From Bugula neritina (Eukaryota; Animalia; Bryozoa), in assembly GCA_964035545.1 (NCBI GenBank), contig OZ037767.1:7946581-8010580 (forward strand): a stretch of 64,000 nucleotides of DNA, read 5' to 3'. The position numbers and the translations under genes are program-made. How positions within the stretch are numbered: the first letter of the stretch is position 1; the number at the start of each line of letters is the position of its first letter. The notes below the pieces were generated by a model. The model saw only the letters and a program-made list of their open reading frames with translations. It searched no databases and had not been told where the DNA came from. Shown here in pieces: positions 1 through 64,000 of this stretch.

Positions 1-3000
1 TCAGCTCTCCAGACCCTCACTACTGGTGTAGATAGTCTATGTGAGTTTCTAGACCAGATAGTGAAGTTATACAGCTGACCTCCATCTAAATACACTGTAT
101 AGGATGTATTATCAGTCTCTTCAGTAGTTTCTGTGTTGTTCTTATTGTAGGTGTATGATATTGTGCCATGGCAGTTCACTCTACTAGGAGGCTAAAAATT
201 AAATGAATTAATTATTCTAAATCTCCTTATATTTGATAGATATTTACACACACTCACACACTCACACAAAATGAGAGTGCCCTTGCACCCAATTTGTCTC
301 TACAACATCAGTCACACTTCAATTGATTGATTCCTTTAGTATGTACAGTAGGTGTATACAACAATTATAGCTCATGAGTGATTTCAGTCAACTTATTACA
401 CATGCACTCCTACACAATGTTTTAGCTAGTTTTCACAATTTAGCTGCCAATTTGTATATGGACCGGCTTTTGCCTTAAACTAAAAGCATATTAACAAACA
501 CAACTAAATAGTTAAAATGTTTATTTTAGTTTCCCTTGGTTTCTTGTGTTTTTTCTGAATCATTTATTGAATAAGGATTTGTGAAGCATGATGGTTTTTT
601 TCATCACAGTTTGAAAATATATCATTAGTTCATATGACAATGACGTTGCGCTTTAATCTTGCAGCATACTTTCCCAGTTTTTGCATGCTATAATGTGCAT
701 AGTTATAATCAGCTAGCACATAAAAATGCCTCATGTATATATAGCAATTTTTATGAATTCTGAGCAAACTTCAAGTTTTGGTCCTAACTTGCTAATCTGT
801 AGCTAATAAATAAAGTTAAATTACTCTCCATAAGCAACCTGCAATTAGAAGTTTGACCTACATATGGTTTTTAGTATAACTCGGATCATAGATACATTTG
901 AATTATACAATCTATATACAAAAAACTGTTTTACATATAAAAGTACATTTTTCAAAATCTCCTTATAGGAAATATAATTTATTGTTTAGTTTTTCATTTA
1001 CATGCATATACTAATATGTGCATACACCAATACACCTATAAAATTTCGACCTATATAATATAGTCTATACTAACTCAGAAATACTGAATAAAATTTGACT
1101 CAATAATGAAAAATCAACTATTTGCAAGTGGTAAAATAATTGCGATTATGACTAGTACAAAGGGGGGTAAGCTGAAACACAACTACTATTTAAAAACTGA
1201 CAACTAAAGTTGGGTTGAATAACTACTTATAATAAGTGATGTAAAAAGTTTCTATGTAAATATTTCTATTTTTTCATCCAATATAAGAATCTCAAATGTT
1301 TATCTAAATGAATTATTTTTCAGAGGTTGCATTTAAACCTTTTGACTAAACTAAAATATAAGGACTTTTCAAGTTGAGTTATTGTAGTTTATATGAGCTA
1401 ATAGGGTCACTATAATATATGCCAGAACACCTTAATTTATATAACTTGGGTAATATAGAAACTCACATTCCATGTAATGGTGTATTTCCAAGTTTCTCTG
1501 CCCAGCTCTTCAGATTTTTCCTTGAATATATCACTTATGGATACTACATCTGGTGGGTCTGAATCTATAGAATACACATACATTTATTATTCATTATGCA
1601 TATACTACAATATAATGCTAGGAAAAAATAATGATGGATTAAAATCATCTCAATTAATAATATTGAGGTGAGGAAGAGACAACTATGCGAATTGGTTATG
1701 AAAGCACATTATTACAAATAGATTGATTATAGGTTTAATAATTTCAAAAATTATTATTTGAACTTTTATTAAGAAGTTTTTTAATGGCATGATTTTGACT
1801 GAAATAAAATCAAGATTTTTTAATTCTATCGGAGAATTGGCTGAAGTAATTTGTTCAGTCGATTCAACAATAGGTTGGAAAAAGCAGCTTCAAATTGAAA
1901 TGGTATATTTTTAGCTATAATCATAACTAGTAATGATACATGCACTCACTTGCACAACTAGTATATGCTGATCTTGTGTCTATCTGACTAGGTCCATTTT
2001 TTATCAGTACAGCCACCGTACAAGTCACATTGGTGTATGGCTGGTAGTTACATGAAGATCTAGTGAAAGATTTGTCATTCCCTGTCACAATGATCCACTC
2101 CTTGTCGGTACAATTCCACTAAAGTTTGCAAAAAATGTAAAAGAACTTAGTATTTCATACATTGTTAGAAAATATAAAGGTTCTATCGTTGAAACATTAT
2201 AAACACATAGTTTTATGTAAATATTCAAGTTAGAAAAATTACCACACAGCTTTCAAAACTATTAAACAAAATTTAATTATGTTACTAAAAATAGAAACTA
2301 CCATACCTCATATCTGGCTATGGATTCTCCTGCTACCAGTTGTGGCTGACTCCAGGTAAACTCCATGCAGTCAGAAGAAGTGTTGGTTAGTTGAGAGTTG
2401 AGGGATTTGGTTAAAGAATCTTTAAACAACAATTATAGTTGTTAGAAAAGTAACATTATACAACTTTGGTTATTCAAAAATAATAGTTGACATACACAGT
2501 TGACTAGGCAACTGCTATAAGCTGCTTACATCAGGTATTCTCACTATAGCTACTGGTTTCATATAAAAAGTAAAGAATATACAGGTTTCGAGAAACTGTT
2601 TTGGTAAAAACATTATTATAAGCTATTTTAATTGAAAAAAGAAATTAACATTCTATCTTAAATAAATACACACAATAGAAAGAAGAAAAGTCTATTTCTC
2701 ATAAGTAAGATAATAATTAACACTCATTGTTTCACCAATTATAATAATAATAATTAGTATAGTATTACTTACTTGACTCATACACCGTTACTTCTGTCAA
2801 AGAGAGAGGCTCAGTACTCTCACTGTACACAGCAACATGTCTTGCAGATATCAGTGGACTAAACTTTATGATTCTAACGGGTCCATATGCTTTACTATTG
2901 GGACCATCTCTTACTGTCCAGGTGGTAGCACTTAAAGATGGTGGACCAGGTGAATAGACATCTGATGTCAACACTGATATCTTCACAAGTCTGTAATCTT

Positions 3001-6000
3001 TAAAAAGAATATAGAGCTAGCAAAACATCCATACTGAGGAAAAGATGTCATTTCAGCATCGTCATATTATATAAGACAAATGTAATGCTTATAATACTTC
3101 TACAAGAAATAAATGGAATAATGAACTAATTGCAGTGAACAGATAATGTATCATTACTAAAAAAATTAATATTTTACTCCACCAGTCTCTCAGACTATAA
3201 CTTTCACTGGAAGTATTTTTTGGCAATGCCTACTTTTTAATTACTGAACAATTATTAAGCAATAATTTAATGCATTTCAATGATTCACATGCAAATTTGT
3301 TGCTACAACAAATAAAGCAAAAAGTAAATAATAACAATCAAGTCAGTAAAAAGCCTCAAACTATTGCTCAGTTTTACTCATATTATATATTGCCTGACCA
3401 CAACACAGGTACAGCACATGCACAAACTTTGTTAACAGCCATTCAAATGCAAATTAATTTAAGCCATCTCACTGCAAATTAGGAATAAAAAGAAATATTT
3501 TATTCAATTTTGTCACCTTCAACTTATTGTCGCTCAACTTCATGCGTATTCATTTCATTCGTTAACTATTTTATTATAACTACATTTAGTGTCCTTTTTG
3601 TAATATTTAAATGTTGAATTGCAGCAACCAAGTTACTTATAAATTTGTGCTTTTAAGCATAATTGCAGTCTTCTACTCTTTTTCAAATTTGAAGCAAATC
3701 TAGACAATTTTAAAACATTACTGCATGTATGCTTTAGTTGTTTTTAGTAATAATTGCAGAATGATTACCAAAAAATACCGCATGAATAAAACATGCGGTA
3801 ATATGTATTTTGAAATTGCTTAGACTTGTTCTAAATTTAAAAAGAAACACAAATATATAAAAAAAATGAGTAAACTTACAATACTTGGCAGCTTCTCCAG
3901 GATCTCCCAACCTGTTGTATAACTCTATTCTACCAATATGATAAGATATTCCAAGGTCTAGCCTCCACCACTTGTCTCCACTGTTACTACCTGATGAGTG
4001 AGTGAAGTCACTTACCACATCAATTATTTCATTAACTGCTAAACTTGCTGGATAAGCTATAGCAGGATTAAAATTATCCAGCTGGTGAGTATACTTCTTA
4101 TAGGCGATGTTGCAGCTTCCTAAAACGGTTATAATAATGCTAGATTAGCTAACTTTAAATGCAACCTACTATTTATTGTTTACTCATTATATATCCCCGT
4201 AAATTTTTGAATGCATGGTTATCATAAACAAAAAACATGGGCTAAATGTTCATGTTGTTTTATATTTTCCTAGTTTAATTATTTTATTATACTTCTAGTT
4301 TTTATAAAGAGTAACTGTGAGAGGCTTATGTAGACTAACTGACCATATTATAGCTGAAGTTCTATAGCCGCTGTCACTTTAACATAAATTATAAAATAGA
4401 CAATTCTGAGAAAGTGCTTGTAACAGCTGATCTACTACCCAAGATCAAAAACCCATGTAACTGAGTACATTTTGAGTAAACTAAACAAAATAACTATACT
4501 AAACGTTTATGGATAAGTGTGCATCAAACTCAAACAAGCCTATACATTATTGTTTTCAAGTTTATTGTTTAAGGGTTAAACAAATATAGGAAAATTTTAT
4601 AGTCTGCATGGCAGTCCCACCATGAGAACACTAATATAGGTGTCAATGCTATAGAAGCTATACAAAAAATGTGTCCTATAAACCCTCTATGCCAAATTTG
4701 AACATTTTAATAGCTTTTTTTATATATTAATTTAATTAATTTATCCTATGCTAACTCCAGTTCCGCCTAAATTGATTATGAAACTTTTTTTACTAATGCA
4801 AAGTTCCTTCAGCAAAAAAAGAATTATAGTTTAGATTATTATATTAAAACAAACAATAAATAAAGTTTATTGTTATACTAAAAAGAATAATCACTAATGT
4901 ATTGGTTGAGTGATAACTATTTGAATATATAGCATATAAAGAACTTTTACTTAAAATTATGCTAACCACATATTGGAAATTTTTAACTTATTAGAAGTAC
5001 CTGTATTTCCTGTTTGTATAGTCTGACTCACTTCCTGGCTAGCATCTCCTGCTACTACAGCCATTACAGTACACGTGACCTGTGTAGAGGGGGTAACTCC
5101 ACAAGCTCTTGCAAATGTTACGTCAGAAGATACACTGGCCCAGTTGTGACCACCGCATTTATGCTACAAATAAGCATACCAATAAATATAGAATAACTTT
5201 TTTAAGTATTGAACATTTGTAGTATGAAAATTTACAAAGTTTTTCTTCAATTTTTGTTGTGAACAACTAATTAGGATTACTATACAATTCAGAGGTATTG
5301 GCTGAGTGTTGCCTTGTTTTTCAGAAATAATGTTGCAAATCGGTGACTTGAGAGTTGCTTACTCTTGTTTTTATCTAGATTAATGCTCAGGAACTATCTT
5401 CATGTGTTGTAAGATATATTCCTCTCAAGTTTTGAGATATAGAAGCCAATGCTAGAATAGTTGGGCGGAAGTACTATAGAGTCATATAATTGACAGAATG
5501 AAAAAATAAAATAAACATCTAATATTAAACTTATAGTATAGAAACGATACTGTCTTATAATAGCGCAGTTGGCAGTTGGCTCTCGCAGAGGGAGGTTGTG
5601 TTTTCAATGCTCTCTGTAATGCTTTTACTGTTGACATTGTGGCGCAGTTATTGCAGCCTTTGTTTATGCTGGCTTATAATCACCCTCATTTACAAGCCAA
5701 GAGGAGTGAAAGGCCTTGAACATATTATTATGGATTATCAAGCTCTGTTGGATATTAAAAGCTCTATGACTCGACATCAGCTGAAAGATATTTGGAACAC
5801 TAACTACAAACACGCAGTAGGGGTAACGGGGGGGGGGGCACAACGGTCATAGGGGTACAAAAAGACGGCCGAATTGTGAGAGAACTTATTGACTTAGAGT
5901 TGTGATTTTTTCTCCATAAAAAGATATTGACATAATTATTTAGCCTTTGTAGTTTCAACACTTGCGGAACATACGTGTTGAAAAGGCGAGTAAAAAACTG

Positions 6001-9000
6001 TTTTTACCTACTTTTTGTAAATTTTTTAGGATGTCGTTGAAGCCTTATAACTTTTTACACTCAAAGGCAAGAAGCCTAGATTTTACTAATATTGTTGCCA
6101 TTGCTTGTCTCTACAATGCTTAACTATTATAACAGCAAACACTGAAATGAATTTTCCTTGAGGCACATTTATTTTCTATTTGGCCACACGGGGCACAATG
6201 GGCCACGCTGACCGGGGCACAATGGGCCACCTGGTTATTGCACCCTGATCACTGTTATTAGTTTCTTTGCCCAAAAATTTGGTTGAAATGTTACTAAAAT
6301 CTATAGATATAGCCATTTCTGACCTTTTTGTAAAATATCAAAGACATCATGGTAAGACTACAAAACTACAAGTTAAAGCTCTCCTAATACATACATCTGG
6401 TGAGGTTGAAGCTTTGCCATTTTATACATAATACAAAACACTCTGCTGTTGCTACTTGTAGATAGTCATGATAATCATTATATATTACACCATTGAGAGA
6501 ATATACATGCATTTGACTGAAATAAATTGTGATTTGCTAATTTGCTCCCCCCTCTCCCATCCGTACTCCAGTCACAAACCTCAGCCATGCATGCACCTTA
6601 GCTACAGTTCATTGAAACAAGTTCACTCAGAATTTTGTAGTACATTTTAGTAAAGTTTTTTTTAACAAACGTTGCTCTGAAGTAAAAATAACAAAACATT
6701 TTTAGTTTTAAACAGTAATGATAATGGCACTGCAGAACCGAATGACATGCGTTTGATTTTGCCTCCCTCTGCTATTCGTAGTGGCACAAACTGTACAGCT
6801 AAAACATGAATTTTGCTGTAGATCTGAAAGAGTATCTTTATTTATTTGTATTATTAAATAAATAAAGATTAGATATAACAAAATACGCAAAATTTCCATA
6901 TATTTGTTGTGTCCCACCCAGTGGCCCATTGTACCCCGGTACCGGGGCACAATGGGCCAATTTTTTCATCATGAAAATTTCGTTATTCTGAAAGTTGTGA
7001 AAGAGATAGAAACAACAAACTGATACCTGTAATAGACAACAGATGTAGCATTAAGAATAGAGATTATTGAACTAGTAACTTGAAAAACAGACAAATGAGA
7101 GCAACAAATGCAAAATTCGGCCCGTTGTGCCCCCGTTACCCCTAAAGGTTATTGATCCCAGACTTCTTCGATCTAGAAAGAGGGGCAAGCGTGGCGGAGT
7201 TAGAGTCAACCACAGTACTAAAACTGGTAAAGTACCACTACCTGCAGTTGTGCTCACTAATGCACAATCTGTAAGAAATAAACTCGACGAACTCCATGGT
7301 CTCCTTAAAACTAAAAGACTTAGTAACCAATCTCAGCTCATTTGTATAACAGAATCCTGGCTTACTCCAGATGTGCTACATTCAAGAACTGAGCTTGAAG
7401 GATATGAGCAGTTCCGTATGGACAGACTTCCAGATGCTAGCGGTAAAACCTGTGGAGGAGGCATTCTAGTCTATATTGACAACAAATGGTCAACAAATAA
7501 CAATCTTATATTCAACTATATGGACAATCACTGTGAAATTATGACAATTAAATCAAGACCTCACTGGCTTCCAAGAGAGTTTACTTCAATTATCACTGTT
7601 TCATGCTATACTCCCTTCACCGGTGCTTCTAGACTAAAACAAAATGCTTCATCCACAGCTAAAAAAATATCAACACATGTTAAAGAACTAGAAAAAAAGC
7701 ACCCTGATTCTTGCATTTTTGTAATGGGGGACTTTAATCAGCTTCCGATTAAACTTGATGGATACTATCAAACAGTCAAAACACCTACCCGCAACAATAA
7801 AATTCTTGATAAATGCTATATCAGAATCAAAGATGCCTTCAAACAATGCCATCAACTTGCAAAGCTTGGTGGGTCAGATCACTTTATAACACATCTCATA
7901 CCAACCTACACACCATTATCTAAATACAAACCAACTCGAGTCACCAGACTTATATATTCTGAAGAGAACTGTGAAAAGCTGAAAGCAGCATTGGACATTA
8001 CTATCTAGAGTAATCTGCTCTCTGATGATGATAACATCCATCAACAAACTGAAATTGTAACAGACTATATAAACTTCTGCACAGATATTTGCATACCCAC
8101 GAAAAGCTTCAGAACATGTACCAATCAGAAACCTTGGATTACTAAACATATTACAGAAATGATCTATCAAAAACAAGTAGCCCACAAAGAAGGAAACCGT
8201 AAACTATATAATAAGCTCAAACGTGACATCAATAGATCTATAACCAACAGCAAAGTTAATTACTCTAAGAAAATTCAACTACAATTAGTAAATCAACCAG
8301 CCAAAGCATGGACTGATATAAAGAAAATAAGTGGTCTACCACACAGCAAGACAACTACTGCTAAAGCTAACCCATTTACACCTGATGACCTAAATACCTT
8401 CTTCACCCGATATGAAAAGCCTATATCTCATCAGCCTGTTTTTGATAGAAACATTATCAGTGCACCTCCATTGGAAATATCAGAAGACGCTGTTCTCAAA
8501 CAGCTAAAGGGACTAAATTCACGAAAAGGTGCAGGTCCTGATGGTCTCATTCCGAAAGTTTTAAAAATCTGCTGCTATCAACTAGCACCTGTCTTTACAA
8601 AACTGTTTACTTTCTCCATCCAATCTAAGACAACTCCAAATTCATGGAAATCTGCAATGATCAAGCCACTTCCTAAAGTCAAAAATCCTGAACTACTTAA
8701 ACAATATCGTCCAATTGCTCTCACAAGCTGTATATGCAAAATGCTGGAAAGGCTCATCAAACACTACATTATAACTCATACACCTATGGACAAATATCAG
8801 TTCGCATATCGTACAAATCGCTCTACACAAGATGCGCTGTTATGTCTAACTACAACTGTGACAAGTTTCATTGATAAGAAAGCATCCAATTACACAAGGT
8901 GCCTCTTTCTAGACTTCTCTTCTGCATTCAATACTATATCTATTCCAGACCTCATTACGCAACTAACTCATCTTGACTCCAATGTTACTGAGTGGATTTA

Positions 9001-12000
9001 CAGCTTTCTTACAAACAGAGTACAGCGCACAGTAGTGGATGGCATAACATCAAATCCAATCATAACTAACACAGGAACTCCCCAAGGGTGCTGTTTATCT
9101 CCACTATTGTTTTCTATTTACACTAATAGGATTACCTCAAGCCAGAGCAACATCACTGTAATTAAATATGCAGATGACACTTGCATTATTGGCTGCATTG
9201 GCAAACAGTCTGATCTAAATATTTACTTTGACGAGATTAAAATAATTTCTAAGCAATGTGATGATTTAAATATATTATTAAACCCTAGCAAGACCCAAGA
9301 AATGATGTTCTCAACCCAACGTGCTAAACCTCATACCCCTACTCTCGTATTGAATGGAACAAACATTGTATTGTCTGAAAAAGTGAGATATCTTGGTGTG
9401 TTAGTGGATCAGAATTTGAGATTTCATGAACATGTACAATCAGTAGTAACAACAGCATCAAGAAGAATGTATATTGTGAAGAATTTTTCGTATCTTAGCT
9501 CTAAACCTCTAGCAAATATGCTATTCAAAAGTTTCATCATGTCCCGCATCGACTATTGTCTACCTACTATTTTTACTTGTATCTATGCCAGTGATAAAAA
9601 GGCTATTCGAAGAATTTTCAAAGATTGCTCAAAACTCGGAATTAGGTATCTAAACATTGATTTGCACATTCAGAAACTCACTAAAGAACTTGCCATCAAA
9701 TATATAACAGACAATGACCATTTCATCAATAACTTTCTTAGTCAATGCCCTTCTGGAAGATATCGAACCATCAAATATAGAGGGACATGGGGCAGAGATA
9801 GCTTCTTGCGACATCTTGTAAATACTTTAAATGAGCTTTTATTTTAAATAATCCAACAGAGTTTTGATTTTTTCTCTTATTTTTGTTCATTCCTACTTAT
9901 TATAGCCAGTATTTACACTGAATTTTGCAACGTGTTGTCATGTTTGTGATATGTAATAAATCAATCAATCAATAAAACTATTCTATCATATGAGATAAGA
10001 AGAAATTTATAAATATAAGCACCTGTTGATCAATGAATCTTTCATAGGTTAGTTCATGTAGAAAATACCAAAGATTCTTTAGTTGGACAATAAATATTAT
10101 TATAGTAATTGCAACGATGGAACTTACTTTAGAAAATGTTCATCATATACAATGAACACATATATACTTACTGTATATAATAAAATTATAAATTTGATTT
10201 ATACCATGATAACTTTGAAAGGAAATAGGTTTTTATCAGTATAGAAACACTGGTTATATACCAACTAATTTTTATATACATATATATTATAAAACGGGTT
10301 GAAAAACTTACCATATATGATTTAACGAACAATTTCCAGCTGTTTTAATTAAATGTTGAACTATAAGCCAAACTACCTTTTGACAAACTTAAATCTCACA
10401 TTTACTAAATCTTCCGTTTTTTTATACTTTTAAACTATAATTATATTACATGGCCCATATTAATTACCTCATATCTTAAAATGTTTCCATTAGTTCCTTG
10501 TAATGCTGTCCATTCCAAATCAATACAGGTGCTGCCACATGGTGAAAGAGTCAGGGTTAATGATCCATCCCATGATGCTGCCAAATATAAGATGACAGAA
10601 ATAAACACTGTTACCATAATCAAACTGTATTTATATTCAGCGAGAAGTTTTTATTAGGGCACTCAACATAACACAAAAATAACGTAAGTTTACAGTCACG
10701 TCCCTGTGAGAAACCTCTGATGGAACGGTTTTTGTTTGTTAAATTGAGCTACGGTCTTATTCAGATGGGGAACAAGAGCAATTACATGACTGGATGCTCT
10801 TTCTAACAGCCCAAATGGTCTTTGTGCGGGCTCGAATCCATGACTTCATACTTACTATAGGCAAACGCTTTAACCCCTAGACCATAACTGCTCCCACACT
10901 CAACGTAGCTGAGTAATGAGAAAACATTAAAAATGTATGTTGCAGTGTACTTTTTAAAAAAAAAATTATATTTGTTACCAGTTTGTCAATTAAATGCTAA
11001 AACCATATCAATATGATTATGTGAGTATACAAGATTCAACAAATCGATAGTGAAGCAGAATCAAGCAATTGAGAATAGCATTATTTTTAATCTGTAAAAT
11101 GGTGGCAAGGTTTCAGGCTGTTAGTGTTACGTCATATGCAAGACCTTTATCATTATATTATATTTTAATCTATTATAATAGTTCATCGACTGGGATACAT
11201 CACTGAAATGGCAATGGTTGCTTTTCAGCTGAAAATTATTTTTGCTCACTGCACAACTACTCATATAATGAGCTTTCAAGTAGAATGGAGTTGACATTCT
11301 TCAAAGGGCAGAGTTTGTTAACTTTGATAAATCTGTTTTGCTAGCAATCCAGTGTTACTAAAATTATTTACTGCAAGACATATAGATTGCAAATGACAGT
11401 ATATGGATTTGATACAATTGATCTTTTACCTGATACATAAATTTCCACTTCGGTAAGAGCCAAAGTACTGTTAGGTGTAGACCTGTATACAGCTATATAT
11501 CTGGCATATATCTGTGGGTTGAACAGTATGATACCAACTGGACCATAAGGTTCAACTTGATAGCTCTGCTCTGTCCACTGCAAGCAGTTGCGACATGGTG
11601 GAACTGAGTTTGTTGTTGATGTCAGAATAGAGATGTTTTGAAGCCTGTTATCTAAATAAAATGACAGGAGCAGTATATGATATAGTAAATTAAAAACAGG
11701 TAGCAACTAATCAAATCTTACTAAAAAGCATAGTAAAGAGTAGTAACTAGTAAGTAAATCAATTTTTATTGAATAAAGCTTATAGGCTACTGAAAATTGT
11801 TGTAATATGCTAAGATCCACCTACATAGTTGATCACAGTTTTAGAATCAAGGCAATTCAGTTTGCGTGAAATACATGTAAAATATGTATAAATTGGTCAA
11901 TACTTGTGCTGAGTGCTCTATAATCAATGCGATGCTTTTAACCCTGTAAAAAGTGTCAGGGGGTAAGAATAAGTACTACAAATATGCTTTTCAAAATTTA

Positions 12001-15000: not shown

Positions 15001-18000
15001 TTTCATGGTTTTATACTATCTTGCTTTGTAATATAAGCATGACTATATTATATACTCACAATTATGGGTGCCATCAGCATTTGTGGGTCTGTTGTGTATT
15101 TCTATTTTACTGACCAACTTTGGTCCTCCATTAAGTTGTATTCTCCACCAAGCATTACTATTCGAACTAGTCCAACAGAAGCTGCTGTAGTCATCATCGT
15201 TTGCTTTTATACTCCAGTGTTGATTATCATATGAGTTGATCTGATCTGCATTTCCTGGCAGGCGGAAACCTAAAATCAACAAAAGTAAATTGATACTAAG
15301 AATTTACTTTTTATTCTCACAATGACATTAATTTGACTATGGCCAAGAGCTTAAAACTTTTTGAATATGCATGCATGAGTAAGCAATAAACTTGACACCA
15401 TATATAATATTTCTATAAATGGTAATTTTAATATAGAAGTATAATTTCATTCATGCTAAATTTTCAAATATAAATTTTAACTATATGAATAAGTATACAA
15501 AACACATATAGTTTTATTACTTATTAAACAAAGTGTATAATTAACTAATATTTTGGACACCACTGTGCCCATTTTCAGAGTTACAATGAAGGATGAAAAT
15601 TCACTCTGAAGATGGGCACAGTATAGTGCCAAAAATATTAGTTAATTACTTTGTTTAATAAAGTAATAAAACCAAATGTTTTAAGTATACTTATTCATAA
15701 TTAAATTGCTAGCTCATAAAGATATATATTTAAATTGTAAATATATTTAATAAGAGCTATAATGTACATACTAAATATGTACTATAATTCTTAATAGATA
15801 AAGCTTCTGAACTTTTCAAATAAAACATCTGAGATTTCATTATCTTGATAAATACTCCCAGAAAATTTATTATGCTCCAGATTGTGCATGATTTATGTGG
15901 AACTAAAACTGTTCATTTAGATTCTAGTATAATGAATAATTACTATAAATATGTACACAAGCATATTGTGCCAGGGAGAAAATCCTGGCTGTTTGTTAAA
16001 ATTTAAATGAAAGATATGATAGCTTTTTGCAGCTTGTTTAGCTATTTGTTAGCTTTTTGCTATGTATTTTTAATGTATTATAGAAGCGTTAGTAGTTCAC
16101 TTGCCAGGAAGACGCTATAAAGAGCTGATGTTTGTAAGTAGAATTATAATTTTAAAACTTTATGTTTTGTTGATGTTATTTGAAGATGACTTATTTATGT
16201 GTTTTTGGGCAGGATGTATAGCCATTTTTTGATATTTTGATAGAGTACAAGACAAAAAGTGAAAAAAAATTCAAAAATTAAAAAATTGTTGCTCCATGCT
16301 TGTTACTAGCCAACTCACTAAGCTAAGTCATTCCTGGCACACATATTATTGTGCACTACAATGGGTTGCAATAGAATTGCATGCCATACTAATAGATATT
16401 TTAAGTACATATAATTATGCACATGCTTGCTAATATTTGAAGAACAAAACTATGTAATAATTTATAGAATAGAAATTGTGACAAAGTATTTAGCTAATCA
16501 ATAAAGAAAACAATAAAAAAACTCAGTTAATAATAGATGATGGCTCATAACTTAAAAAACAAAATGGATTTATTGTAAGGATTTATATAGGAGTTATCTT
16601 TAATGTATCAAAAGGACAACGCTCTTACTACTTCGCTACTATAGTAATATACGTAGCGTCCATCATCTACTCGGCCGCTAGTAATGGCCTACCACGCTAC
16701 TAACATACGCTGTGGGCTATGGGAGGAGCCTAGTAATGTGAGCTGACAGCCACTAGGCTTGGGTAGCTGGCATTCAGACAGTGAATTAGCTAGTAACAGA
16801 TTTTGTGTACTCTGTCTGTGGTTATGTAACTTATTTTCTAAGTATTGTATGGTTTTACTTGGGTATAAATTGTATTAAATAAACATGAGTATAATAGTCT
16901 CTTTAACTTGGCAGTATTGCATTACTTTAAATACCCAAGCAATCAGTTAATGCACAGTTTCATGACATTATTAATGAGTTCTTGCATGTTATTTGTAGCA
17001 ATGCAAAACTAGTCAGGTATATTATTTAACTTTTAGACTAATTGGGGTCAAACATCATCAGTACAAGAAATCTCTAATTATAGAGCTGAAACGATAACGA
17101 GAGTTATCTGCATGCTAGCTTGACTTGTAAGCATATTATCACTTCTATGTTTAATCTTGGCAACAATACTAAACTGGTGCTATTCTAATCACACAGTTGC
17201 GCTGATACTTTATTCAAAATAGTTTCGATTATCAAAACTAAACTAAAAGCATAATTCAGAATTCAGCTCAGAATTCAGACGACATTTTTTAATAATGACA
17301 ATCAGTGTCATAGACAACAACTTCAACGCAGCAACGTTCATTTTCTCCATTTATAATCTTTTATTAGAGTCTCGTTATTTGGTATGAAGAATATTTTACT
17401 CATAAGAAATTAATTTCCACTAAACATCAGGTAACTGTATTTCACAAATCTAGTATAATTATATAGTACTCTCAAACATAAATTATGAGTTTTCTCAGAC
17501 AAACTATTACGAGTGCAGATGTAAATTTTAACACAATTTAGTAGATGATGGATGAGTAACTCTTATACAACATGTGCAGCAAATGGCCAGCAAATTATAA
17601 TACCTAAATATGCACCTGCTCAGGTGGAGTTGATTAATTACTTAAACAGTTAAAAGTCACTCACTATTGGAGACCAGCAATATATAAAAAATACTTGGAT
17701 TTTAAACTAGTTTTACAGTGTGTATAGAATGTATTGAATATAGTGAAAATCAGTCACTTATATTACTACTTTGGAGTTATGTTCTTTGTATAATTATATA
17801 TTCCATATTACATCATTTTGTAACCTGTTTCCTTTTTACCCATAATCCCTCTCTTTTGTTTCCTGTGTCTCCATTAAAATAAACTGCTGAACTATATTGC
17901 TAAACTGAATAATCTATTTACATCTACACAGTTAGTTTAAGGTCATTACTTTCCAGATTCAGGCACTGCTTTATGTTATATATAAACGGTTTCCAGGGGA

Positions 18001-52800: not shown

Positions 52801-55800
52801 CTGAGTATATGGTATGGTATATATGTGTTATAAGTATCTTAACTCTTTGCTCTAATAAACTTGTAGTACAAATGTACTAATAAAGACTGGATAGTTCACA
52901 ATGGTAATGGAGTGCTGCCAGTAACTGTAAGTGGATATGGAAGAGAGACTGATGTTGTGTGTACAGTCATTGCTGTGGTAAACTCTGGTGAAAGTCAGCA
53001 AAGTAGTGCAGCCATTACTACTGGCAGTGCAAGTGAGTTGATAATTGTTTCCTCTATTCACCTGTTAAACTGTCATGGAAGCAAAGGATCTCTTCCTTGA
53101 TCTGTGAGAGTTTACATAGATTCACTTATCCAATGGTTTCAATTGGGCTCCAGGTTCTAATTATTTCAAAGCAGCTTATAATATGTTTATCAAACTATAT
53201 ATATATATTTTGTATAGTGTATTTATTCAATAAATACTAAGAGAGCAATAATTCAGCTAGAATCTAAAAGTAAAACTATAGTAAACTTGTTGGTCCAATT
53301 CTCTGCTGGTTCAAGTGTGATGGAATGAGTTTCAGTTTTTCAAAAAATTACAAAAGCTCTATAAGCTGTGAATAACCAAAATTAGAGTATAGTTTTACAT
53401 TTGAAATCTAATCAAAAATATTTTTTTATTTTGCTATGAAATTAAGTTAGCTGAACCCTTCCTTAGTGGCATGTAAATTCAATTAGTTCAACACTTATAG
53501 GTTTAAAAGACATTTTTTTAAAAATGGGATGTACATGTATACTTTGTATGATAAACCGTTTATATTATTACTTAAACTCTGTTTTAGGATCTGTTAACAT
53601 TGCAAGGCAAGGGAAAGCTAATCAAATTAACTCTCTAGATAACAATGAAGCATATTATGCTGCAAGCGGAAATAATGGAAACTATATTGATTTCTCACAC
53701 ACAGACTCAAATGATGGTTCCTGGTGGAGAGTGGATCTACACAGTAAATTCTTTATTGGGAGAATAGAGTTGTTTAACAGACAAGGAAGGGATTCTAATG
53801 GTCCTTACTGTTAGTATAATCTTAAGTTAAATGACTCTTGGTCTACATTTTGAAAAGCATATTTGTAGTACTTATTCTAACCCCTGGCACATTTTTCTGG
53901 GTTGAACGCATTGTATTGATTAAAACTCTCAGTGCAAATATTGATCAATTTATACACATTTTATTTGTATTTCACTCAAATTTAATTGTTTTGACAATAT
54001 AATTGTGATCAACTATGTAGGTGGAGCATAGCATATTATTATGACAATCTTTTTACCACAATTTTTTGCCATGATTTTCAATATAAATTTCATTTAATAA
54101 AAGTTGATTTACTTGCTACCACTCAGTCAGCTGCTTTTTTAAATATAATTGAATTATTTGCCACCTGTCTTTAACTTACTATATCATTTACTGTTCATGT
54201 TGTTTTATTCAGATGACAGACTAGATAACATATCTATTCTGACATCAACAACAAACTCAGTTCCACCATGTCGCAACTGTTTGCAATGGACAGAGCAGAG
54301 CTATCAAGTCGAACCTTATGGTCCAGTTGGTATCATACAGTTCAACCCACAGATATATGCCAGATATGTAGCTGTATACAGGTCTACACCTAACAGTGCT
54401 TTAGCTTTAACTGAAGTAGAAATTTATGTGTCAGGTAAAAAAATCAATTGTATTAAATCCGGTTCCTTTCATTCGTCATTTATATGTCTTGTAAATAATT
54501 TTAGTAACAATGGATTACTAGTAAAACAGATTTATCAAGGTTTCTGTTGTATACAAACTCTGTCTGTTAAAGAATGCAAACTTTATTTTACTGGAAACTT
54601 TATTATGGCTAGTTGTGCAATGAGTCAAAAAAAGACTTTTAACTGAAAAATAGTCATTATCATTTCAACAGCGTATCTCAGTTTATAAAATGATTTTAAT
54701 TTAATGAAATTATAATATAATGAACAATAAATGTCTTGCATATGATGTAACACTAGCAGTCTAAAACACTGTCACCAGTGTACAGATTATAAGACTGCTA
54801 TTTTCACTTGTGTAATTTTGCTTCATGCACTATTAATAATTGGTTTTAATTTTCATGTATATAGTCACATGATGACATTGATAGGGTTTTAATTGACAGT
54901 TTTAATTGGCAAATTGTTAACAAATATAAATAATTTAATTGAAAAATGCACTGCAACATAAGTTATTATGTTTTTTCATGACTCAACTATGTTGAGTGCC
55001 ATGATAGAAATTTCTAACTGAATATAAATATAGTTTGATTATTGTAACAGAATGTTTATTTATATAATCTTATATTTGGCAGTATCAGTTGATGGAATGA
55101 TAACACTGACTCTTTCACCATGTGGCAGCACTTGCATTAATTTGGAATGGACAGCATTACAAGGAAGTAATGGAAACCTCTTAAGATATGAGGTAATTGC
55201 TGTTGGTTATATATGTGATATAGGAGCTATACCATTAGGAACTATGTTTAAGGTTATAAGATTTAAGCTTGTCAAAAATATGGTTTTGCTAGTTAAATGG
55301 TACATAATTATGCATGCTGCAAAATATTATTAAACAAATTTCACTGAACTGCAAATTTTGTATGTGTTTTTAAATTACAAATAATTTGGTACTTAAGATG
55401 AACTCAGCTGCAAAAAAATCAGTGTTACATGCCTATAGAGTTCATTTATGTGTGTGCGAGTGTGAGTGTTATATTATATGTGAATAGTGCTGTTGATAAG
55501 TGCTACTTTCATACTGTAAGTGTAACAAAAAAGTATCTTGATTGAACCAGGCTCTAGCATTCTGACAAGGTATACCTGTTCAAGTTTCCTGATCACAGTC
55601 ATCTCCAAATCTTAATAATAGAAAAGTTACAAAACATACAAACATCATTACACACTTTTCATTCACAACTTATAATTTCTACTATAAGTGTAATCAGTAT
55701 TGTTAGAATAGCCGAATGTTAGTGTATTAGAGTGATTCTTCCATAGTGTATAAGTTTGTTAGAAAAGTTTTTGAATAAATGTAAAACTCAGCCTATAGTG

Positions 55801-58800
55801 TAGCTTAGCTAAACTAAAAAAATGTATGCTGCACTTGTCCCATCCCTATAACTTATACTATGTGTTTTTATTATTGTTTGTCAGTATAAATGCGGTGGTC
55901 ACAACTGGGCCAGTGTATCTTCTGACGTAACATTTGCAAGAGCTTGTGGAGTTACCCCCTCTACACAGGTCACATGTACTGTAATGGCTGTAGTAGCAGG
56001 AGATGCTAGTCAGGAAGTGAATCAGACTATACTAACAAGAAATACAGGTACTTCTAATTATAAATTAAAATTTTTCAATATGTGGTTCGCAGAATTCTAG
56101 GTAATTTTTCTTTTTATATGTTATATTTAAATAATTACCACTCAACCAATACATTAGTGATTATTCCTTTTAGTATACTAAGAACTTTTGTTTTTTGTTT
56201 GCTTTAATATATTAATCCAAACTATAATCTTGTTTTTAGCTGTGGGAACTTTGCATTAGTAAAAAGAATTCATAATCAATATAAATCATATAAATAAAAT
56301 TAGCATAGGATAAATAAATTAGAATAATATAGAAAAAGCTATTCAAATGTTCAAACTTGGCATACTGCCTATATAGGACATATTATTTGTTGTAGCTTCC
56401 ATAGCATTGACACTTATATTATAGTTTTAACATGATGGGTCTGACAGACTATAAAATTTGCCTATATTTTTTAAACTTTAAACAATAAATTTAAAAATAA
56501 TAATATATAGGCTTGTTTGAGTTTTATGCACACTTATCCATAAACGTTAAGTAGTCATTTTGTTTAGTTTATTTAAAATATACTCAGTTACATTGGTTTT
56601 TGGGTAGCAGATCAGCTGTTGCAAGCACTTTCTCAGAATTTTTTATTTTATAATTTATGTTAAGGTGACAGTGGCTATAGAACTTCAGCTATAATATGGT
56701 CAGTTAGTCTACATAAGCCTCTCACAGCTACTCTTTATAAAAATTCGAAGTATAATAAAATAATTAAACGAGGAAAATATAAAACTACATGAACATTTTA
56801 GCCCATTGTTTTTTATTTATGATAACCATGCATTCAAAAATTTACGGAGATAATGAATAAATAATAAATAGTAAGTTGCATTTAAAGTTAGCCAATTTAG
56901 CATTATCTTAATCATTTTAGGTAGCTGCAACATTGCCTATAAGAAGTATACCAACCAGCTGGATAATTATAATTCTGCTAATAGATTCCCAGCAAGTCTA
57001 GCAGTCAATGGAATTATTAATAATGAAAGTGATTTCACTCACACATTAAGTAGTAACAGTGGAGACAAGTGGTGGAGGCTGGACCTTGGAATATCTTATC
57101 AGATTGGAAGAATTGAGTTATACAACAGGTTGGGAGATTCTGGAAAAGCCGCCAAGCATTGTAAGTTTATTCAAATGTCTTTATATTTGTGTAGTTTTTT
57201 TTTCAAATTTGGAACAAGTCTAAGCAATTTCGAAGTATAATATATTACGGTATGTCTCATTCATGCAGTTTTTTTGTAATCATTCTGCAATGATTACTAA
57301 AAACAACTAAAGCATACATTAATATTTTAAAATTGTCTAGATTTGCTTCAAATTTGAAAAAGAGTAGAAGACTGCAATTATGCTTATAAAAGGACAAATT
57401 AATTAGTGATTTGGTTGCTGCAGTTCAACATTTAAATATTACAAAAAAGGACACTAAATGTAGTTATAACAAAATAGTTAACGAATGAAATGAATATGCA
57501 TTAAGTTGAGCGAGAATAAGTTAAAGGTGACAAAGTTGAATAAAATATTTTTTTTATTCCTAATTTGCAGTGAGATGACCTAAATTAGTTTGCATTTGAA
57601 TGGCTGTAAACAAAGTTTGTACATATGCTCTACCTGTGTTGTGGTCAGGCAATATACATAAGTCATTTTACTTAATTTAGTACACATTGGAAATCTCCAG
57701 TTTTCAGCTATTTTTTACATTTTAGCTGCTAATAAACAAAGGTTTTTGCCCAAAACTAGTAAAGTATAAATGAACATCCTAAATAATTGAAGTTCTTCTT
57801 AATTTTACTTGATTTCCCATGCATTTTTTCTATTTATTCTGCTACTTCTGATTGCAGACCATTACGGTTTTTTTTCGTAAAAGCTCGCAATCCAAGTTAC
57901 TTAAATAAATAGGAAAAACATGGGAAATCAAGCAAAATTAAGAAGAACTTTGATTATTTATATGTATTTATAAATATTTTACTGATTTTGGGCAAAAACT
58001 CATGTTCATTAGCAACTAAATTGTGAAAAATAGCTAAAAAATGGAGATTTCCAGTGTGTACTAAATTACGTAAAATGACCCATATATGAGTAAAACTGAG
58101 CATTATTTTGAGGCTTTTTACTGACTTGATTGTTATTATTTACTTTTTGCTTTATTTGCTATAGCAACAAATTTGCATGTGAATCATTGGGATGCATTAA
58201 ATTATTGCTTAGTAATTGTTCAACAATTAAAAAGTAGCCATGGCCAAAAAATACTTTTAGTGAAAATTATAGTGTGAGAGACTCATGAAGTGAAAAATTA
58301 GTTCTTTTAGTAATGATACATTATCTGTTCATTGCTATTAGTTTCGTATTTCATTTATTTTTGTAGAAGTATATTATATAAGTATTATATTTTTCTTATA
58401 TATTAAGACGATGCTGAAATAACATTTTTTCCTCAGAATGGATGTTTTGCTAGCTCTATATTCTTTTTAAAGATTACAGACTTGTGAAGATATCAGTGTT
58501 GACATCAGATGTCTATTCACCTGGTCCACCATCTTTAAGTGCTACCACCTGGACAGTAAGAGATGGTCCCAATAGTAAAGCATATGGACCCGTTAGGATC
58601 ATAGAGTTTAGTCCACAGATATCTGCAAGACATGTTGCTGTGTACAGTGAAAGTACTGAGCCTCTCTCTTTGACAGAAGTAACGGTGTATGAGTCAAGTA
58701 AGTAATACTATATTAATTATTATTATTATAATTGGTGAAACAATGTGTGTTAATTATTATCTTACTTATGAGAAATATACTTTTCTTCTTTCTATTGTGT

Positions 58801-61800
58801 GTATTTATTTAAGATAGAATGTTAATTTCTTTTTTCAATTAAAATAGCTTATGATGATAGTTTTACCAAAACAGTTTCTCGAAACCTGTAGATTCTTTAC
58901 TCTTTATATGAAACCAGTAGCTATAGTGCGAATACCTGATGTAAGCAGCTTATATAGCAGTTGCCTAGTCAACTGTGTATGACAACTATTATTTTTGAAT
59001 AATTCAAAGTTGTATAATGTTGCTTTTCTAACAACTATAATTGTTGTTTGAAGATTCTTTAACCAAATCCCTGAACTCTCAACTAACCAACACTTCCTCT
59101 GACTGTATGAATTTTACTTGGGATCAGCCACAACTGGCAGCAATAGAATCCATAGCTAGATACGAGGTATAGTAGTTTCTATTTTTAATAACATCATTAA
59201 ATTTTGTTTAATAGTTTTGAAAGCTGTGTGGTAATTTTTTCTAACTTGGTTATTTACATAAAACTATGTGTTTATGATGTTTCAACGATAGAACCTTTAT
59301 ATTTCTTAAAAATGTATAAAATACTAAGTTATTTTGCATGTTTTGCAAACTTTAGTGGAATTGTACCGACAAGGAGTGGATCATTGTGACAGGGAATAAC
59401 CAATCTTTCACTAGATTTTCATGTAACTATCAGCCATACACCAACGTGACTTGTATGGTGGCTGTACTGATAAAAAATGGAGCTAGTCAGATGGAAACAA
59501 GATCAGCATATACTAGTTGTGCAAGTGAGTGCATGTATCATTACTAGTTATAATGGCTTTTGACAAAAAGTTATCGAAACTAGTAGGACTATTTGTATAG
59601 CTGTAGTGAAAATTATGTTTTGTAGTTTTCACTACTAACTATCTTAGTTTACTTTTAGCTGTGTATATGTAGCAACATGTGGTGCGTCTTCAGTAACAAT
59701 TTGCACCCAATTGAGAAAACCAGATGCTATTTGGTTCAAACTGATGTTTGATCTTCTTTTTATAATTTGATGTATTTATTAGCTTTTGAATAATCAATTT
59801 TTCAGAATTCCAAGTCATTTTGAAACAGATACGGTAATGATACACTGCATTTATTTTTCTCGTAATAATAAATTGCAAAGGTTGAATATAATCTGTAACC
59901 TAATTGTGACTTATTATTATTCTATTATATAATTAGTAGTATCTGCTGGTGCTTACTCTCTGTAGATCCAGATCCACCAGGTGTAGTTGCTACAAGTGAT
60001 TTAGACAAGGAGAAGTCTGAAGAGTTGGGCAGAGAAACTTGGAAGTACACTATTAAATGGAATGTGAGTTTCTATCATTTCAATCTACTAATCTAACATG
60101 CTGAGTCTACTATTGGAGTTCATTTAAAAGCTTACTATTGCAAATTGAGCTCTATTTCTACAGAAGTTCAAAGCAAAATATCTCCAAAAAAGCAATTTTT
60201 TTTTTAAAATTACTAATTTAGATTTTATACTGGTTTCAAGATGTGTAGCTTAGTTTTAGCTTGAGCTTCTATTGGAGCTTAAAATCTGGGTCTGGCTTTG
60301 TGATTGAAAATTTTATTGTAAACTCATAAAACACTTAATCAACTTTGAAATTATAAAGAAATATTTTAAATTCTCTTGATTTGATCTGATTAGTTTTTAT
60401 GACTGGAATCGCAAATGCATTAGTAGTTCCAGTTAAGTACTGAAATAAGTGGTGTTCAAGTGAATGGTTATATGCTAGTTAGCAAGGAATTTGCTAAATC
60501 TATTTTATATACATGCATGTTGAGTTTTCAAGCTAAAATGTTGTGTATTAAATTTGGAATTTACAAATTGATTCTATTAAGTTACATAAATAAACCCATG
60601 CAGATTTATAAAAAGCAGTTTGTAGTCTATTGATATCATACTGATAAGATAGGTTGATGACCTTTTACAATTTTGACATTTAAACAGGTTGGTTTATGAA
60701 AACATATATATCCCCCCCCCTTCAGAGAAAAGTAAATTCAGTAATAAAGAAATGAGAAAATAAACTCTGTTCTGGAGAGAACATGTAGCAAAGGAAGTTA
60801 TTAACAAAACTCTTTAAAGAAAATTAAAAGAACTTACCCTTGTTCACGCATTGCCGTACCGTGAGCTGTAACAGGAAATGTAACATCCGGGCTGAATCGT
60901 ACCCTGGTATATGCTGCAGAGTTAATCAAGCAGTGCTTGATTTAAAAATTCACGGCTGGCTCCCATTGGGTAGAGTTGATCTGGTACTAAAATTTAAAGA
61001 ATATTTTCGCTAGTTTATTTTAATCGATTATTGTTGATTTAATTTAACTAATTCAAAATTTTTGAAAGATAAAAAATTTTTATCCGGCTTGTTTAAATTA
61101 AACTCAGCTTAAAAATTTAGCTTTCCCTAGTCACAAAAGCAGGCAAACCAAAAATTTAAAAATTATTTGGATGGCTAAAATATTTATTATTCAAATTAGT
61201 TTGTACAATTATTTTAAGGACACATATACTTGAAAAAGAGATTTTTTCTTTTAATTGCTTTTATGTAGTCAATAGCTTTTCTATCATAATTATCTTTTGA
61301 GAAGAATGTTGCGACAAATAAGTGAATAAGATTCAAAGGCCACAAGTCACCGCAGGCAAGAATTAGCCTTATTATAATTGGTCACAGCTCAATGTCATGC
61401 GTTGTAATTTTACGTCAGTGTGTGAACGCCTGTTGACAAAACGTAACAGCAGCGCCATTTTGTTTGTGCTGTTACAGCGTACTATACGGCAATTTGTAAA
61501 CAGGAAGTTAGGCATAATGAAATTTCTCCACTACTGTACCAAACTACGAAAAAAACTCTGACACTCCTATATATAACTCATGAATAAAAAAGTTTCAAAT
61601 ATGGTTGAAAAATTGAACAATTAATAATTCAAAAACTTAATGAAAGTGAAACTCCTGTAAATTATTATACCTAAACAATGTAGCAATTTTCAATATATGA
61701 ATATCCCTTTTCTGGTGCACTAATAATACATGGCTTATAGTATAATTCAAATTTAATTAAAATTGAAATATTTTCAATTTTTAGCCTCCTAGCAGAGTGA

Positions 61801-64000
61801 ACTGCCATGGCACAATATCATACATCTACAATAATAACAACACAGAAACTACTGAAGTGACTGATAATACATTCTATACAGCACATTTAGATGGAGGTCA
61901 GCTGTATAACTTTACTATCTGGTCTAGAAACTCACATGGACTATCTACACCAATAGTGAGGGTCTGGAGAGCTGATGAGCTAGGTGAGCATATCATATTA
62001 CCTCTATATAAGGTGACACAGTATATGGCAAATATGTTATTATTACTGGTATCTAAAAGACTGGCTGATTAAAATAATATTATGTTTTAGCTCCACAATT
62101 TGAAGAAAATGATATAGAAATAGCTACCAACTCGTCTCAGTGTATTCAATTGACAGTTAAAGGATTTAAATACCCAGGTGGAAATATAACTACATTTCAG
62201 GTATGACTGAGCTACTGTAAAATATACTTATAACTGCAGTTTCTTTGTCCCTACTGGTAGCTCTTTTGTAATTTTACCTACAATGTTGCTACTTTGAGTT
62301 CTGGCAATTTATTTTTGCTGATGCATTATAACATAAAAAGATATTTAAAAGCAAATAATTTGTTTTATAAAGTGATATTAAAATATTCAATCTACGATAA
62401 GGAGATCTTTGTTTTATTATTAAAAAAAATTAAATAGTTAATGTTTTACCTCTTAAAAGTACAGATATACTAAAAGCAGTCAAACTTTTGCTTTGTACAC
62501 TAGTAATATTCGACTCACACTATTGTTTTTATCCTATTTGTTTACAAAATTATTTAAACATGCAGTGTGATGAAATGAAAACTATTTATATAATAAATCT
62601 TAAAAAGTTTGCAGCTGTGATGGTTTTGAGTGTGATCTTTAATATTATATTAGGCTCAGATCAATCTATTGCAAACTGTAGCTATATAACCTGCTACACT
62701 TTTTGTTTCCTAAGCGTTTGAAATTGTACAATGTCAGATGCTATATATAATACATACACCTACATTATTATTAATCCAGAGCAAATGTAGTGAAGAAAGT
62801 ACATGGACTGATCTTGACCTTAACCAAGAAACAGCAAGAAGTGTGTGTATCTACAGTCCCTATTCTGCAGTAAGCTGTGAAGTAAAAGCAAATAACAGTG
62901 CTGGGGTTACAACAGAAGTTAAAAACATCTCAACTCTTTGTGCAGGTTGTCTAGTATATGTTTGCTTGTATTTTAACAGCTAGCTTGTTGTTCCCATCAC
63001 ACACTAATAGTAGAAACTCATGCAAGTTTATTGTCATTATTCCTGTAAATGTTTTTAACGCAGACTAAGAATCCATTCCGATGTAACACAGGAGTAATTA
63101 TGACTGGGCGCTTTTTCGGGCATAACCAATTGTCTTTACTCGGATTCGAACCCATGACTTTCTGTTCACTAAGTTAATGCTCTAACACCCAGTTGCTTTC
63201 TCACAGCACACTAGCTAATATCATGTGCATGCTACACAGATATGAAACTTTGTGCCCCAAATTCTTAAAGGGTGCATTTAAACAATATCGCTGTTGCTAC
63301 TCGTACAATATTATAATAATATACGTAACAGAAGTTGAACATTTTTGAACATGACTTGTTGGTTATTTGCTATTTCTATTTGAGGCGGATTAAATTTATA
63401 TTGTCTTAGTTATGCCTGAACTTTTTTTTATAAACTGTTACCTGATATTAAAAAATGCAGTTTAATAGAGTGCGACTGTTGTATAATGAGATTTTGAATT
63501 TCAGATCCAGAATTAATTGGAGAAATAGAACTGTATCAAGATTACATTTCTGAAAACAACACCAGAACTATCACTGTTAACATGACGCAGGTTAGTTATA
63601 AAAAGTATAGGTTGATACAGTGTCAGATAGATGTTTTAGATTTAGTAATGTTGTAGTACATTATAATATACTACTGTATTTTAATAAATATGAAACATGC
63701 ACAAACACTATAATAATCCAGTAACACAGTATGTCACAAATTTTTAACTATGTATATAAAAGTGGCAATGCATTATTTTTCATGCAACCTTTCAAATATA
63801 TAAGATATAATGCATTGAATGAATAATGAAGTATTTGCAATTTTTTGTTCAAATCATTATGCAGGTCAGTTATTTGAAATCTTGTTATGATTACCTTTTC
63901 TCTTTATTTAGGTAAACATAAATTGACTGCAGTTGATGTGACTGTGACTATGCTTCAATATTTGTTTTCTTCAACTCAATCTCCTAGAATGACAACCTTT
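46777..64000 (+). CDS. Gene C: F-type lectin x3 / FN3 receptor-like protein with a longer FN3 stalk, 3' end outside the window
   Basis: Exons: 46777-46852 (signal peptide), 50831-51037, 51293-51529, 52201-52304, 52867-53032, 53588-53809, 54213-54434, 55083-55192, 55885-56047, 56921-57160, 58473-58697, 59054-59166, 59356-59524, 59966-60063, 61785-61983, 62091-62200, 62780-62945, 63505-63590. All are GT-AG with matching phases, giving 971 open codons. No TM exon appears before the window ends. Confidence 0.88.
57658..58083. mobile_element. Palindromic MITE (GTCATTTTAC..AATTTAGTACAC TIR), gene C intron 10
   Basis: Long imperfect inverted repeat. Empty site in gene A at about 3370-3400. Confidence 0.8.
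60831..61509. mobile_element. Non-autonomous TIR element, gene C intron 14
   Basis: Imperfect TIRs of about 40 bp: aactt..cctgtt.ac..attgccgta..gt..gctgtaacag and its reverse complement. Confidence 0.6.
63015..63200 (-). mobile_element. Diverged SINE copy, gene C intron 17
   Basis: B box GGTTCGAATCC on the minus strand, plus the family core aattatgactgg. Confidence 0.65.

Follow-up and report, generated by a model that had tools for sequence, protein, structure and literature searches.

A bryozoan receptor array in which a predicted F-type lectin/FN3 head is joined to tyrosine-motif tails or to a tandem tyrosine phosphatase

We analysed a window of 64,000 nucleotides from the bryozoan Bugula neritina (GenBank assembly GCA_964035545.1, contig OZ037767.1, here C3, positions 7946581-8010580), with a GC content of about 31% in an AT-rich assembly of 216 Mb. 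Judging from the gene models, this window is the turning point and centre of a bryozoan-specific array of about 1 Mb that encodes predicted type-I membrane receptors. Our main result is that a lectin head, built of F-type lectin (FTL) and fibronectin type III (FN3) domains, would be shared by receptors with a tyrosine-motif tail and by a receptor protein tyrosine phosphatase (RPTP), a combination that is undescribed as far as we could find. The literature search returned no described family of this architecture; an earlier sequence-only reading of this DNA had not recognised it as a named family. Neither the literature nor the protein databases searched yielded a lectin-headed RPTP, or an F-type lectin that was interleaved with FN3, attached to a tyrosine tail or linked to a protein tyrosine phosphatase (PTP) domain.

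Three paralogous multi-exon genes were recognised. Genes A and B lie in tandem on the minus strand, and B forms a head-to-head pair with gene C of the plus strand, the start codons of B (42043) and C (46777) being on opposite strands and 4734 bp apart. Models were built from six-frame stop-free segments, which formed three co-linear sets; flanking DNA was then fetched and paralogous exons were aligned, including those of a fourth close paralog, Z, located left of the window (positions on that side are negative here). Splice sites were chosen as AG/GT conserved across three to four of the paralogs A, B, C and Z, plus manual fixes. The 18 exons of B, the 22 exons of A and the modelled exons of C all had AG/GT borders and open frames. 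The four genes exhibit a common 5' plan, with a signal peptide, three successive FTL-FN3 pairs (FTL1 to FTL3 and FN3-1 to FN3-3) and an FN3 stalk of 2 modules in B, 4 in A, 7-8 in C and 8 in Z. Exon 1 measures 76 nt in A, B and C and 67 nt in Z, encodes a hydrophobic signal peptide starting with Met-Lys-Lys and ends in phase 1. Each domain corresponds to two exons (a and b for its first and second halves) with its borders at phase-1 introns, so that modules can be inserted, lost or swapped with the frame kept; the intron inside the domain is in phase 1 in FTL and in phase 0 in FN3. The sequence-only reading had reported the A/B tandem, the head-to-head B/C pair with 4.7 kb between start codons, and a strict threefold FTL/FN3 alternation followed by an FN3 stalk, all of which we recovered in the models of A, B and C; its statement that the stalks vary was likewise confirmed by the module counts. 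It had also described three intact paralogs of a receptor family. The three paralogous genes are indeed present, but A and C overrun the window, and C, with a tandem PTP at its modelled 3' end and no tail, is a predicted RPTP sharing the ectodomain, a point that was missed.

Gene C starts at 46777, its 25 ectodomain exons extend to 67608 and further exons continue to about 81980, some 18 kb past the window. Exon 1, with the ATG and the signal peptide (46777-46852, plus strand as for all C exons), was placed by alignment and model. The following exons are those of the model: FTL1 (50831-51037, 51293-51529), FN3-1 (52201-52304, 52867-53032), FTL2 (53588-53809, 54213-54434), FN3-2 (55083-55192, 55885-56047), FTL3 (56921-57160, 58473-58697), FN3-3 (59054-59166, 59356-59524) and, for the part of the stalk inside the window, 59966-60063, 61785-61983, 62091-62200, 62780-62945 and 63505-63590. 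Beyond the window come a transmembrane (TM) exon at 70.3-70.6 kb, juxtamembrane exons and, at 73.0-82.0 kb, the PTP domains D1 and D2, recognised by exon matches to PF00102. Where the tail-type genes have a tail exon, C has this tandem classical PTP at its 3' end instead. D1 was complete by motifs (NKGKCRY, DFINASYI, WPDHGVP, IHC/SAGVGRTG for HCX5R, and QYIF for the Q loop) and D2 was degenerate (WCD; TC-LDGSKR-CG). On these motifs, C is a classical RPTP with a predicted intact D1 catalytic site. Its PTP exons lie on the C strand, collinear with residues 523-1069 of P0175, an RPTP of the cheilostome bryozoan Watersipora subatra, and the closest solved relatives of the PTP part of this homolog were RPTP epsilon/alpha (2jjd, 6uzt). 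Splice phases agreed at 17 of the 19 junctions with good sites along the exon chain of C. Only four start exons were found in the 144 kb examined, none of them inside the span of C between the lectin and PTP exons. We thus infer that the lectin ectodomain and the PTP of C belong to one transcript, because of the single start exon, the phase-compatible chain and the single-gene layout in Watersipora.

The public proteins related to the whole ectodomain were four Watersipora subatra proteins encoded on one chromosome, and none was found outside bryozoans. Two of them, P0026 and P0173, are of the tail type. A further one, P0175, bears the annotation "RPTP epsilon-like" and its model begins at an internal Met inside FTL3; by tblastn, FTL1, FTL2 and the initial half of FTL3 were located immediately upstream of it, with no change of strand. 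In the corresponding stretch of OY755164.1, the annotation splits one gene within one exon (9872-10087), the 342-aa "lectin" product ending at 9984 and the "RPTP epsilon-like" model starting at an internal Met at 10001. The lectin domains lying directly upstream and the break falling inside one exon, we conclude that Watersipora has a three-lectin RPTP. The ectodomain of this protein is 77-78% identical to those of the tail-type paralogs, and all are located within 0.9 Mb. The comparison of gene models thus establishes that two bryozoans have in common the pairing of a lectin-RPTP with tail-type receptors. Watersipora has its three lectin domains in one uninterrupted block, and the strict FTL/FN3 alternation is so far found only in the B. 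neritina genome. An exhaustive HMMER search with the FTL3a exon recovered no protein above about 50% identity, the top matches being multi-repeat F-lectins of molluscs, frogs and Bacteroidota, and on this search the A, B and C genes have no public model. The earlier proposal of a clustered receptor family with F-type lectin heads was upheld; the family is of type I and lineage-restricted, with public relatives in Watersipora only.

The first-half FTL exons matched Pfam PF22633 (F5_F8_type_C_2) in searches of Pfam and PDB made exon by exon. The PDB matches of the FTL exons were lectinolysin, FBP32, fucolectin-related protein and AAA, that is, only F-type lectins; DARPin rows among the matches were discarded as low-complexity noise. 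The contiguous lectin domain of Watersipora P0026 matched MsaFBP32 over its full length (7.5e-19). Based on these exon matches and on the P0026 match, the FTL exons encode F-type lectin domains. The FN3 assignment follows from Pfam matches of half-exons (E=6.5e-5 in the stalk, E=0.009 for an interleaved module) together with an hhalign match between interleaved and stalk modules (98% probability, E=6e-14). F-type lectins are characterised by a His52/Arg79/Arg86 triad, the motif RXDX4(R/K) and a Cys pair, and the domain is often multiplied in tandem among its members (PMC5712786). The His and both Arg are kept in FTL2 and FTL3 of A, B and C with unchanged His-to-Arg spacing, and Watersipora FTL1 keeps the canonical RXDX4(R/K) motif exactly.

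Gene B, wholly inside the window, runs from 42043 to 26567 on the minus strand and comprises 18 GT-AG exons encoding 1073 aa. Exon 1, with the ATG and signal peptide (41968-42043, 76 nt, phase-1 donor), was set by the four-way alignment. It is followed by FTL1 (39331-39540 and 38589-38825), FN3-1 (37861-37964, Pfam fn3 match at the E value of 0.009 given above, and 36767-36932), FTL2 (35983-36204, with the His and first Arg of the triad, PF22633; 35090-35311, with the second Arg), FN3-2 (34381-34490 and 33351-33513), FTL3 (31403-31642, matched by F-lectins only in PDB and by Pfam; 30522-30746) and FN3-3 (30098-30210 and 29733-29901). The stalk consists of S7 (28711-28796 and 27798-28014, the latter carrying the stalk fn3 match) and S8 (27487-27593 and 27141-27369). 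Unless a Pfam or PDB match is given, these exons were placed by paralog alignment and model. The last exon (26567-26892) encodes the TM helix and a 75-aa tail with YNMN, YEVP and the stop. The last stalk exon (27141-27369) begins with a tandem duplication of 15 nt; its ancestral donor has changed from GT to CT and a GT located 33 nt downstream is used, with the frame kept and 11 residues added. The TM and tyrosine-motif tail earlier ascribed to B were recovered, the previous model counting 1069 aa.

The tails of A, B and Z measure about 75 residues, with the motifs Y1 (YxN), Y2 (YEV(L/M/P)) and Y3 (VYAx(V/I)); those of A and Z read YMNK, YEVM and VYA(R/I)I. Nine tail exons were located on C3 between 7.11 and 8.09 Mb. 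Their overall identity was only 28-48%, and they share the motifs Y1 (P-x-Y-x-N), Y2 (YEV/P-L/M) and Y3 (VYAxV/I) with the spacing Y2-x13-Y3; Y2- and Y3-like motifs were also present in the Watersipora tails. As judged from these motifs, the tails are a conserved, predicted phosphotyrosine module resembling the immunoreceptor tyrosine-based activation motif (ITAM).

Gene A extends from 25463 to -4671 on the minus strand, with 22 exons, 1249 aa and an intron 1 of 10 kb. It has the same plan as B with 4 stalk FN3; exon S1b straddles the left edge of the window (position 1), beyond which come the eight final exons with the TM and tail (-447 to -4671). Exon 1 (ATG and signal peptide, 25388-25463) was placed by alignment and model, and the model gave FTL1a 15060-15269, FTL1b 14574-14810, FN1a 13553-13656, FN1b 12828-12993, FTL2a 12039-12260, FTL2b 11430-11651, FN2a 10468-10577, FN2b 5001-5163, FTL3a 3880-4119, FTL3b 2773-2997, FN3a 2307-2419, FN3b 1950-2118, S1a 1467-1564 and S1b 1-191 (extending to -7). 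Paralog Z (-7890 to -31677) has 30 exons, 1624 aa and a single in-frame TAG inside a 3-nt insertion in the first half of FTL3 (-18070 to -18312). From FTL2 to stalk module S6 it resembles C (91-99%), and from there on, in S7, S8, TM and tail, it resembles A (93-97%). Decayed C-type exons (P2, P7, D2a-e and D2g, lacking the catalytic core) are located 4-8 kb past the Z tail on the same strand (-35921 to -39303). The most parsimonious account is that Z derives from a phosphatase-type gene onto which a tail cassette was placed, the former PTP exons being left to decay downstream.

Along C3, lectin, tail and PTP exons alternate between 7.1 and 8.15 Mb, on the minus strand left of the gap between B and C and on the plus strand right of it. 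In all, at least nine tail-type and at least six PTP-type 3' ends were counted (one of the latter being a relic). Copies above 85% identity were only A, B, C and Z, and C was 79-98% identical to A and B per exon, with mosaic sharing. Over the exons of the common ectodomain, nucleotide identity was about 86-98%. Four-taxon support grouped A with Z and B with C at the 5' end (39/51 sites) and in the first half of FTL3 with its flanks (19/25 sites), and A with B and C with Z from FN1b to FN2b with introns (157/170 sites). This heterogeneity between blocks (chi2=162, p=5e-34) demonstrates, at the level of the alignments, that segments were exchanged between copies by recombination and gene conversion, of which the sequence-only reading had named recombination. 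The intron flanks of B were mostly unalignable with those of the other copies (50-65%), and its exons were 86-95% identical with a dS of 0.1-0.3, which indicates exon-centred homogenisation, selection, or both.

Variable residues among A, B and C amounted to 32% in the first halves of the FTL domains, which are the exons with the binding-site loops, and to 14% in the second halves (p=1.5e-5); FTL2 showed this most clearly, around its His and in the stretch that separates the Arg pair. The ratio dN/dS (NG86, per domain and per half-domain) was 0.41-0.57 in FTL first halves and 0.27-0.46 in second halves, with dS also higher in the first halves; it was below 1 nearly everywhere, FN3-1 being near 1 on few sites. 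The earlier claim of loop variation therefore stands as regards the enrichment of variable residues in the first-half lectin exons, but the values of 0.27-0.57 do not support positive or diversifying selection on the lectin loops. Since dS is also higher in the variable halves, the pattern rather fits binding-loop regions escaping homogenisation.

We rejected the possibility that A, B and C are uncollapsed haplotypes, as they differ in orientation, stalk composition, introns and 3' ends, the tails of A and B being 49% identical. Contigs from a public DNA run covered the unique introns of B at 98-99% identity (differences of about 1-1.7%), and this coverage in an independent run shows that the locus did not arise through an error of assembly. 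In the same run, exon bins were at 3-8x the unique-intron depth, and exon alleles are inseparable from paralogs because exon contigs are shared.

Several other features were observed in the window. The divergent B/C intergenic region (42044-46776, 4.7 kb) contains about 60 nt 5' of each ATG that are conserved in the four aligned paralogs; long (TA)n-type and (CA)n microsatellites at 41150-41480 and 46019-46190 were assigned to the divergent promoter region, and (AC)n tracts adjoin stalk exon S8a in A and Z. A very high-copy repeat is present in a B intron (31779-33157) and in gene A (5803-7148), with a coverage in the DNA run about 600-1000 times that of unique sequence. In the B intron the repeat is an insertion polymorphism, the public DNA run joining 31807 to 32917 without the 1.1-kb insertion. 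A non-LTR (long terminal repeat) retrotransposon occupies 7127-9847 (plus strand) in the FN3-2 intron of A, with two long open reading frames (ORFs), one of endonuclease type (293 aa) and one for a reverse transcriptase (562 aa); the element is separate from the receptor and possibly still active. Intron 1 of A contains a second reverse transcriptase ORF (19005-20540, plus strand, 491 aa, 31% identical to the first) and a 798-nt inverted repeat (21345-22142 and 22628-23425, 99% complementary, 485-nt spacer), interpretable as a foldback element or as an artefact of assembly.

What could such a locus do? We see about an even chance that one lectin/FN3 head mounted on a tyrosine tail (A, B, Z) or on a tandem PTP (C) constitutes a paired on/off glycan sensor. 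FTL2 and FTL3 would bind a glycan, perhaps fucosylated, through the His/Arg/Arg triad. Clustering of tail-type receptors by the ligand would lead to tyrosine phosphorylation and SH2 signalling, and the phosphatase-type receptor, engaging the same ligand on a longer stalk, would remove phosphate and set the threshold. Such a pair would sense non-self, symbiont or neighbour glycans. The combination of a phosphatase and a tyrosine tail is only suggestive of opposite outputs in the same cell. A broader scheme, in which bryozoans evolved a paired-receptor logic independently to tell apart self, kin, symbiont and foreign glycans, with heads matched by gene conversion and the 3' cassette swapped as in Z, seems to us rather unlikely as a whole. 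Receptor pairs that couple a common sensing head to opposite outputs are characteristic of innate immunity in vertebrates. If the on/off sensor is real, its "off" arm would be a phosphatase inside the receptor itself, joined to the lectin head. The locus would also record an exchange of output modules, Z being a phosphatase-type gene with a tail cassette.

A number of points weigh against the on/off sensor. No RNA run was found among the public runs, so the lectin-to-PTP splicing of C is deduced from the gene model, in which the S9a/S9b and S9b/TM junctions were not convincingly placed; in the sole canonical chain with compatible phases, the TM helix is preceded by about 30 odd extra residues, and comparison with a distant RPTP paralog left this placement uncertain. 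The stretch between the two Arg of FTL2 and FTL3 measures 11-12 residues, not 6, with neither the Asp at +2 nor the Cys pair, and FTL1 carries Trp in place of His and Asp where the second Arg would be. With the triad kept but the motif derived, binding of glycans, perhaps fucosylated, by FTL2 and FTL3 is plausible, not assured, and FTL1 probably does something other than sugar binding. As for the tails, B lacks Y3, the second Tyr of the pair, and the ITAM definition YxxL/I-x6-8-YxxL/I was not matched by the array consensus YEV(L/M)-x10-YAx(V/I). The consensus (S/I/V/L)xYxx(I/V/L) of the immunoreceptor tyrosine-based inhibition motif (ITIM) fits Y2 in several array members (LSYEVL, VNYEVL), not in A or B.

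The same head could instead belong to receptors of adhesion and morphogenesis, the PTP form being a glycan reader similar to LAR or PTPsigma in budding and zooid patterning, with the tail copies as co-receptors or decoys and no role in self/non-self discrimination. Adhesion and guidance are classical roles of FN3-rich RPTPs, the PTP domains have near relatives in RPTP epsilon, alpha and LAR, the family is kept in two bryozoans and dN/dS below 1 gives no sign of diversifying selection. However, developmental receptors do not usually form large young recombining arrays with pseudogenes and turnover of copies, and no member of the family was found among public proteins outside bryozoans; we consider this explanation improbable. 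We regard as more doubtful still a role in allorecognition, as raised by the sequence-only reading, or in kin recognition, with polymorphic ectodomains deciding colony fusion or larval settlement near kin. It would suit a clustered, recombining type-I family of a colonial animal, with variable residues enriched in lectin loops and stalks of varying length, and no bryozoan allorecognition gene is known (PMC7576161). Yet the intron differences to another DNA sample were ordinary (1-1.7%), dN/dS was 0.3-0.6, and known systems use homophilic Ig-like domains, not lectins.

Bryozoans are spermcast maters, which lends some appeal to a receptor for allosperm, by analogy with oyster bindin, whose F-lectin repeats act in gamete recognition (Vasta et al., 2017, PMC5712786). 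Bindin is however secreted, with no TM, tail or phosphatase, and a gamete receptor seems very unlikely. We give equally little credence to tandem duplicates decaying neutrally with no present function. The in-frame stop of Z, the relic PTP exons nearby, dN/dS only moderately below 1 and the lack of an RNA run would agree with such decay, but A, B and C retain open frames and canonical splice sites over 18 to about 45 exons, B exons remain 86-95% identical to the other copies while most intron flanks are unalignable, and the motifs of the tails and of the PTP catalytic sites have been kept. The reading of the window as a recognition-receptor locus is reasonable, an allorecognition role being unproven: the clustered type-I F-lectin family, the recombination and the stalk variation all speak for what the sequence-only reading proposed, which had overlooked the phosphatase end of C and had expected a diversification that dN/dS does not support. 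Bugula exhibits kin-biased settlement and has a vertically transmitted symbiont. Given these traits and the lack of known recognition genes in bryozoans, the array provides concrete recognition candidates.

Among known systems, the vertebrate paired receptors KIR, Ly49, Siglec, SIRP and PIR (PMC3533184) similarly combine clustering, closely similar ectodomains, differing signalling ends and gene conversion, Siglec and Ly49 being lectin-type. They differ from the Bugula receptors, in which the phosphatase is built into the polypeptide rather than being SHP-1/2 recruited by an ITIM, the tyrosine motifs are the receptor's own rather than those of an ITAM adaptor, and the heads are F-type lectin/FN3 rather than Ig or C-type lectin. 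The clustered, recombining type-I receptors Alr1 and Alr2 of Hydractinia, another colonial invertebrate, also have tail tyrosine motifs, but they are Ig-like and homophilic and are defined by extreme allelic polymorphism. The F-type lectins AAA (1k12), MsaFBP32 (3cqo), lectinolysin (3le0), furrowed and bindin belong to the same domain family, whose basic triad is kept in FTL2 and FTL3; most of them are soluble, and Drosophila furrowed is membrane-bound with CCP repeats. On the phosphatase side, RPTP epsilon/alpha (R4) and LAR have the same tandem D1-D2 with the WPD loop, HCX5R and Q loop in D1, whereas R4 ectodomains are very short, those of LAR are made of Ig and FN3, neither has lectin domains, and the D2 of gene C is degenerate. 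CD45 and CD148 are large-ectodomain RPTPs that tune ITAM signalling. They resemble the Bugula pair in setting a long FN3-rich RPTP beside shorter tyrosine-motif receptors (about 13 extracellular domains in C, 8 in B), but their ectodomains are not lectins and they share no ligand-binding head with the receptors that they regulate.

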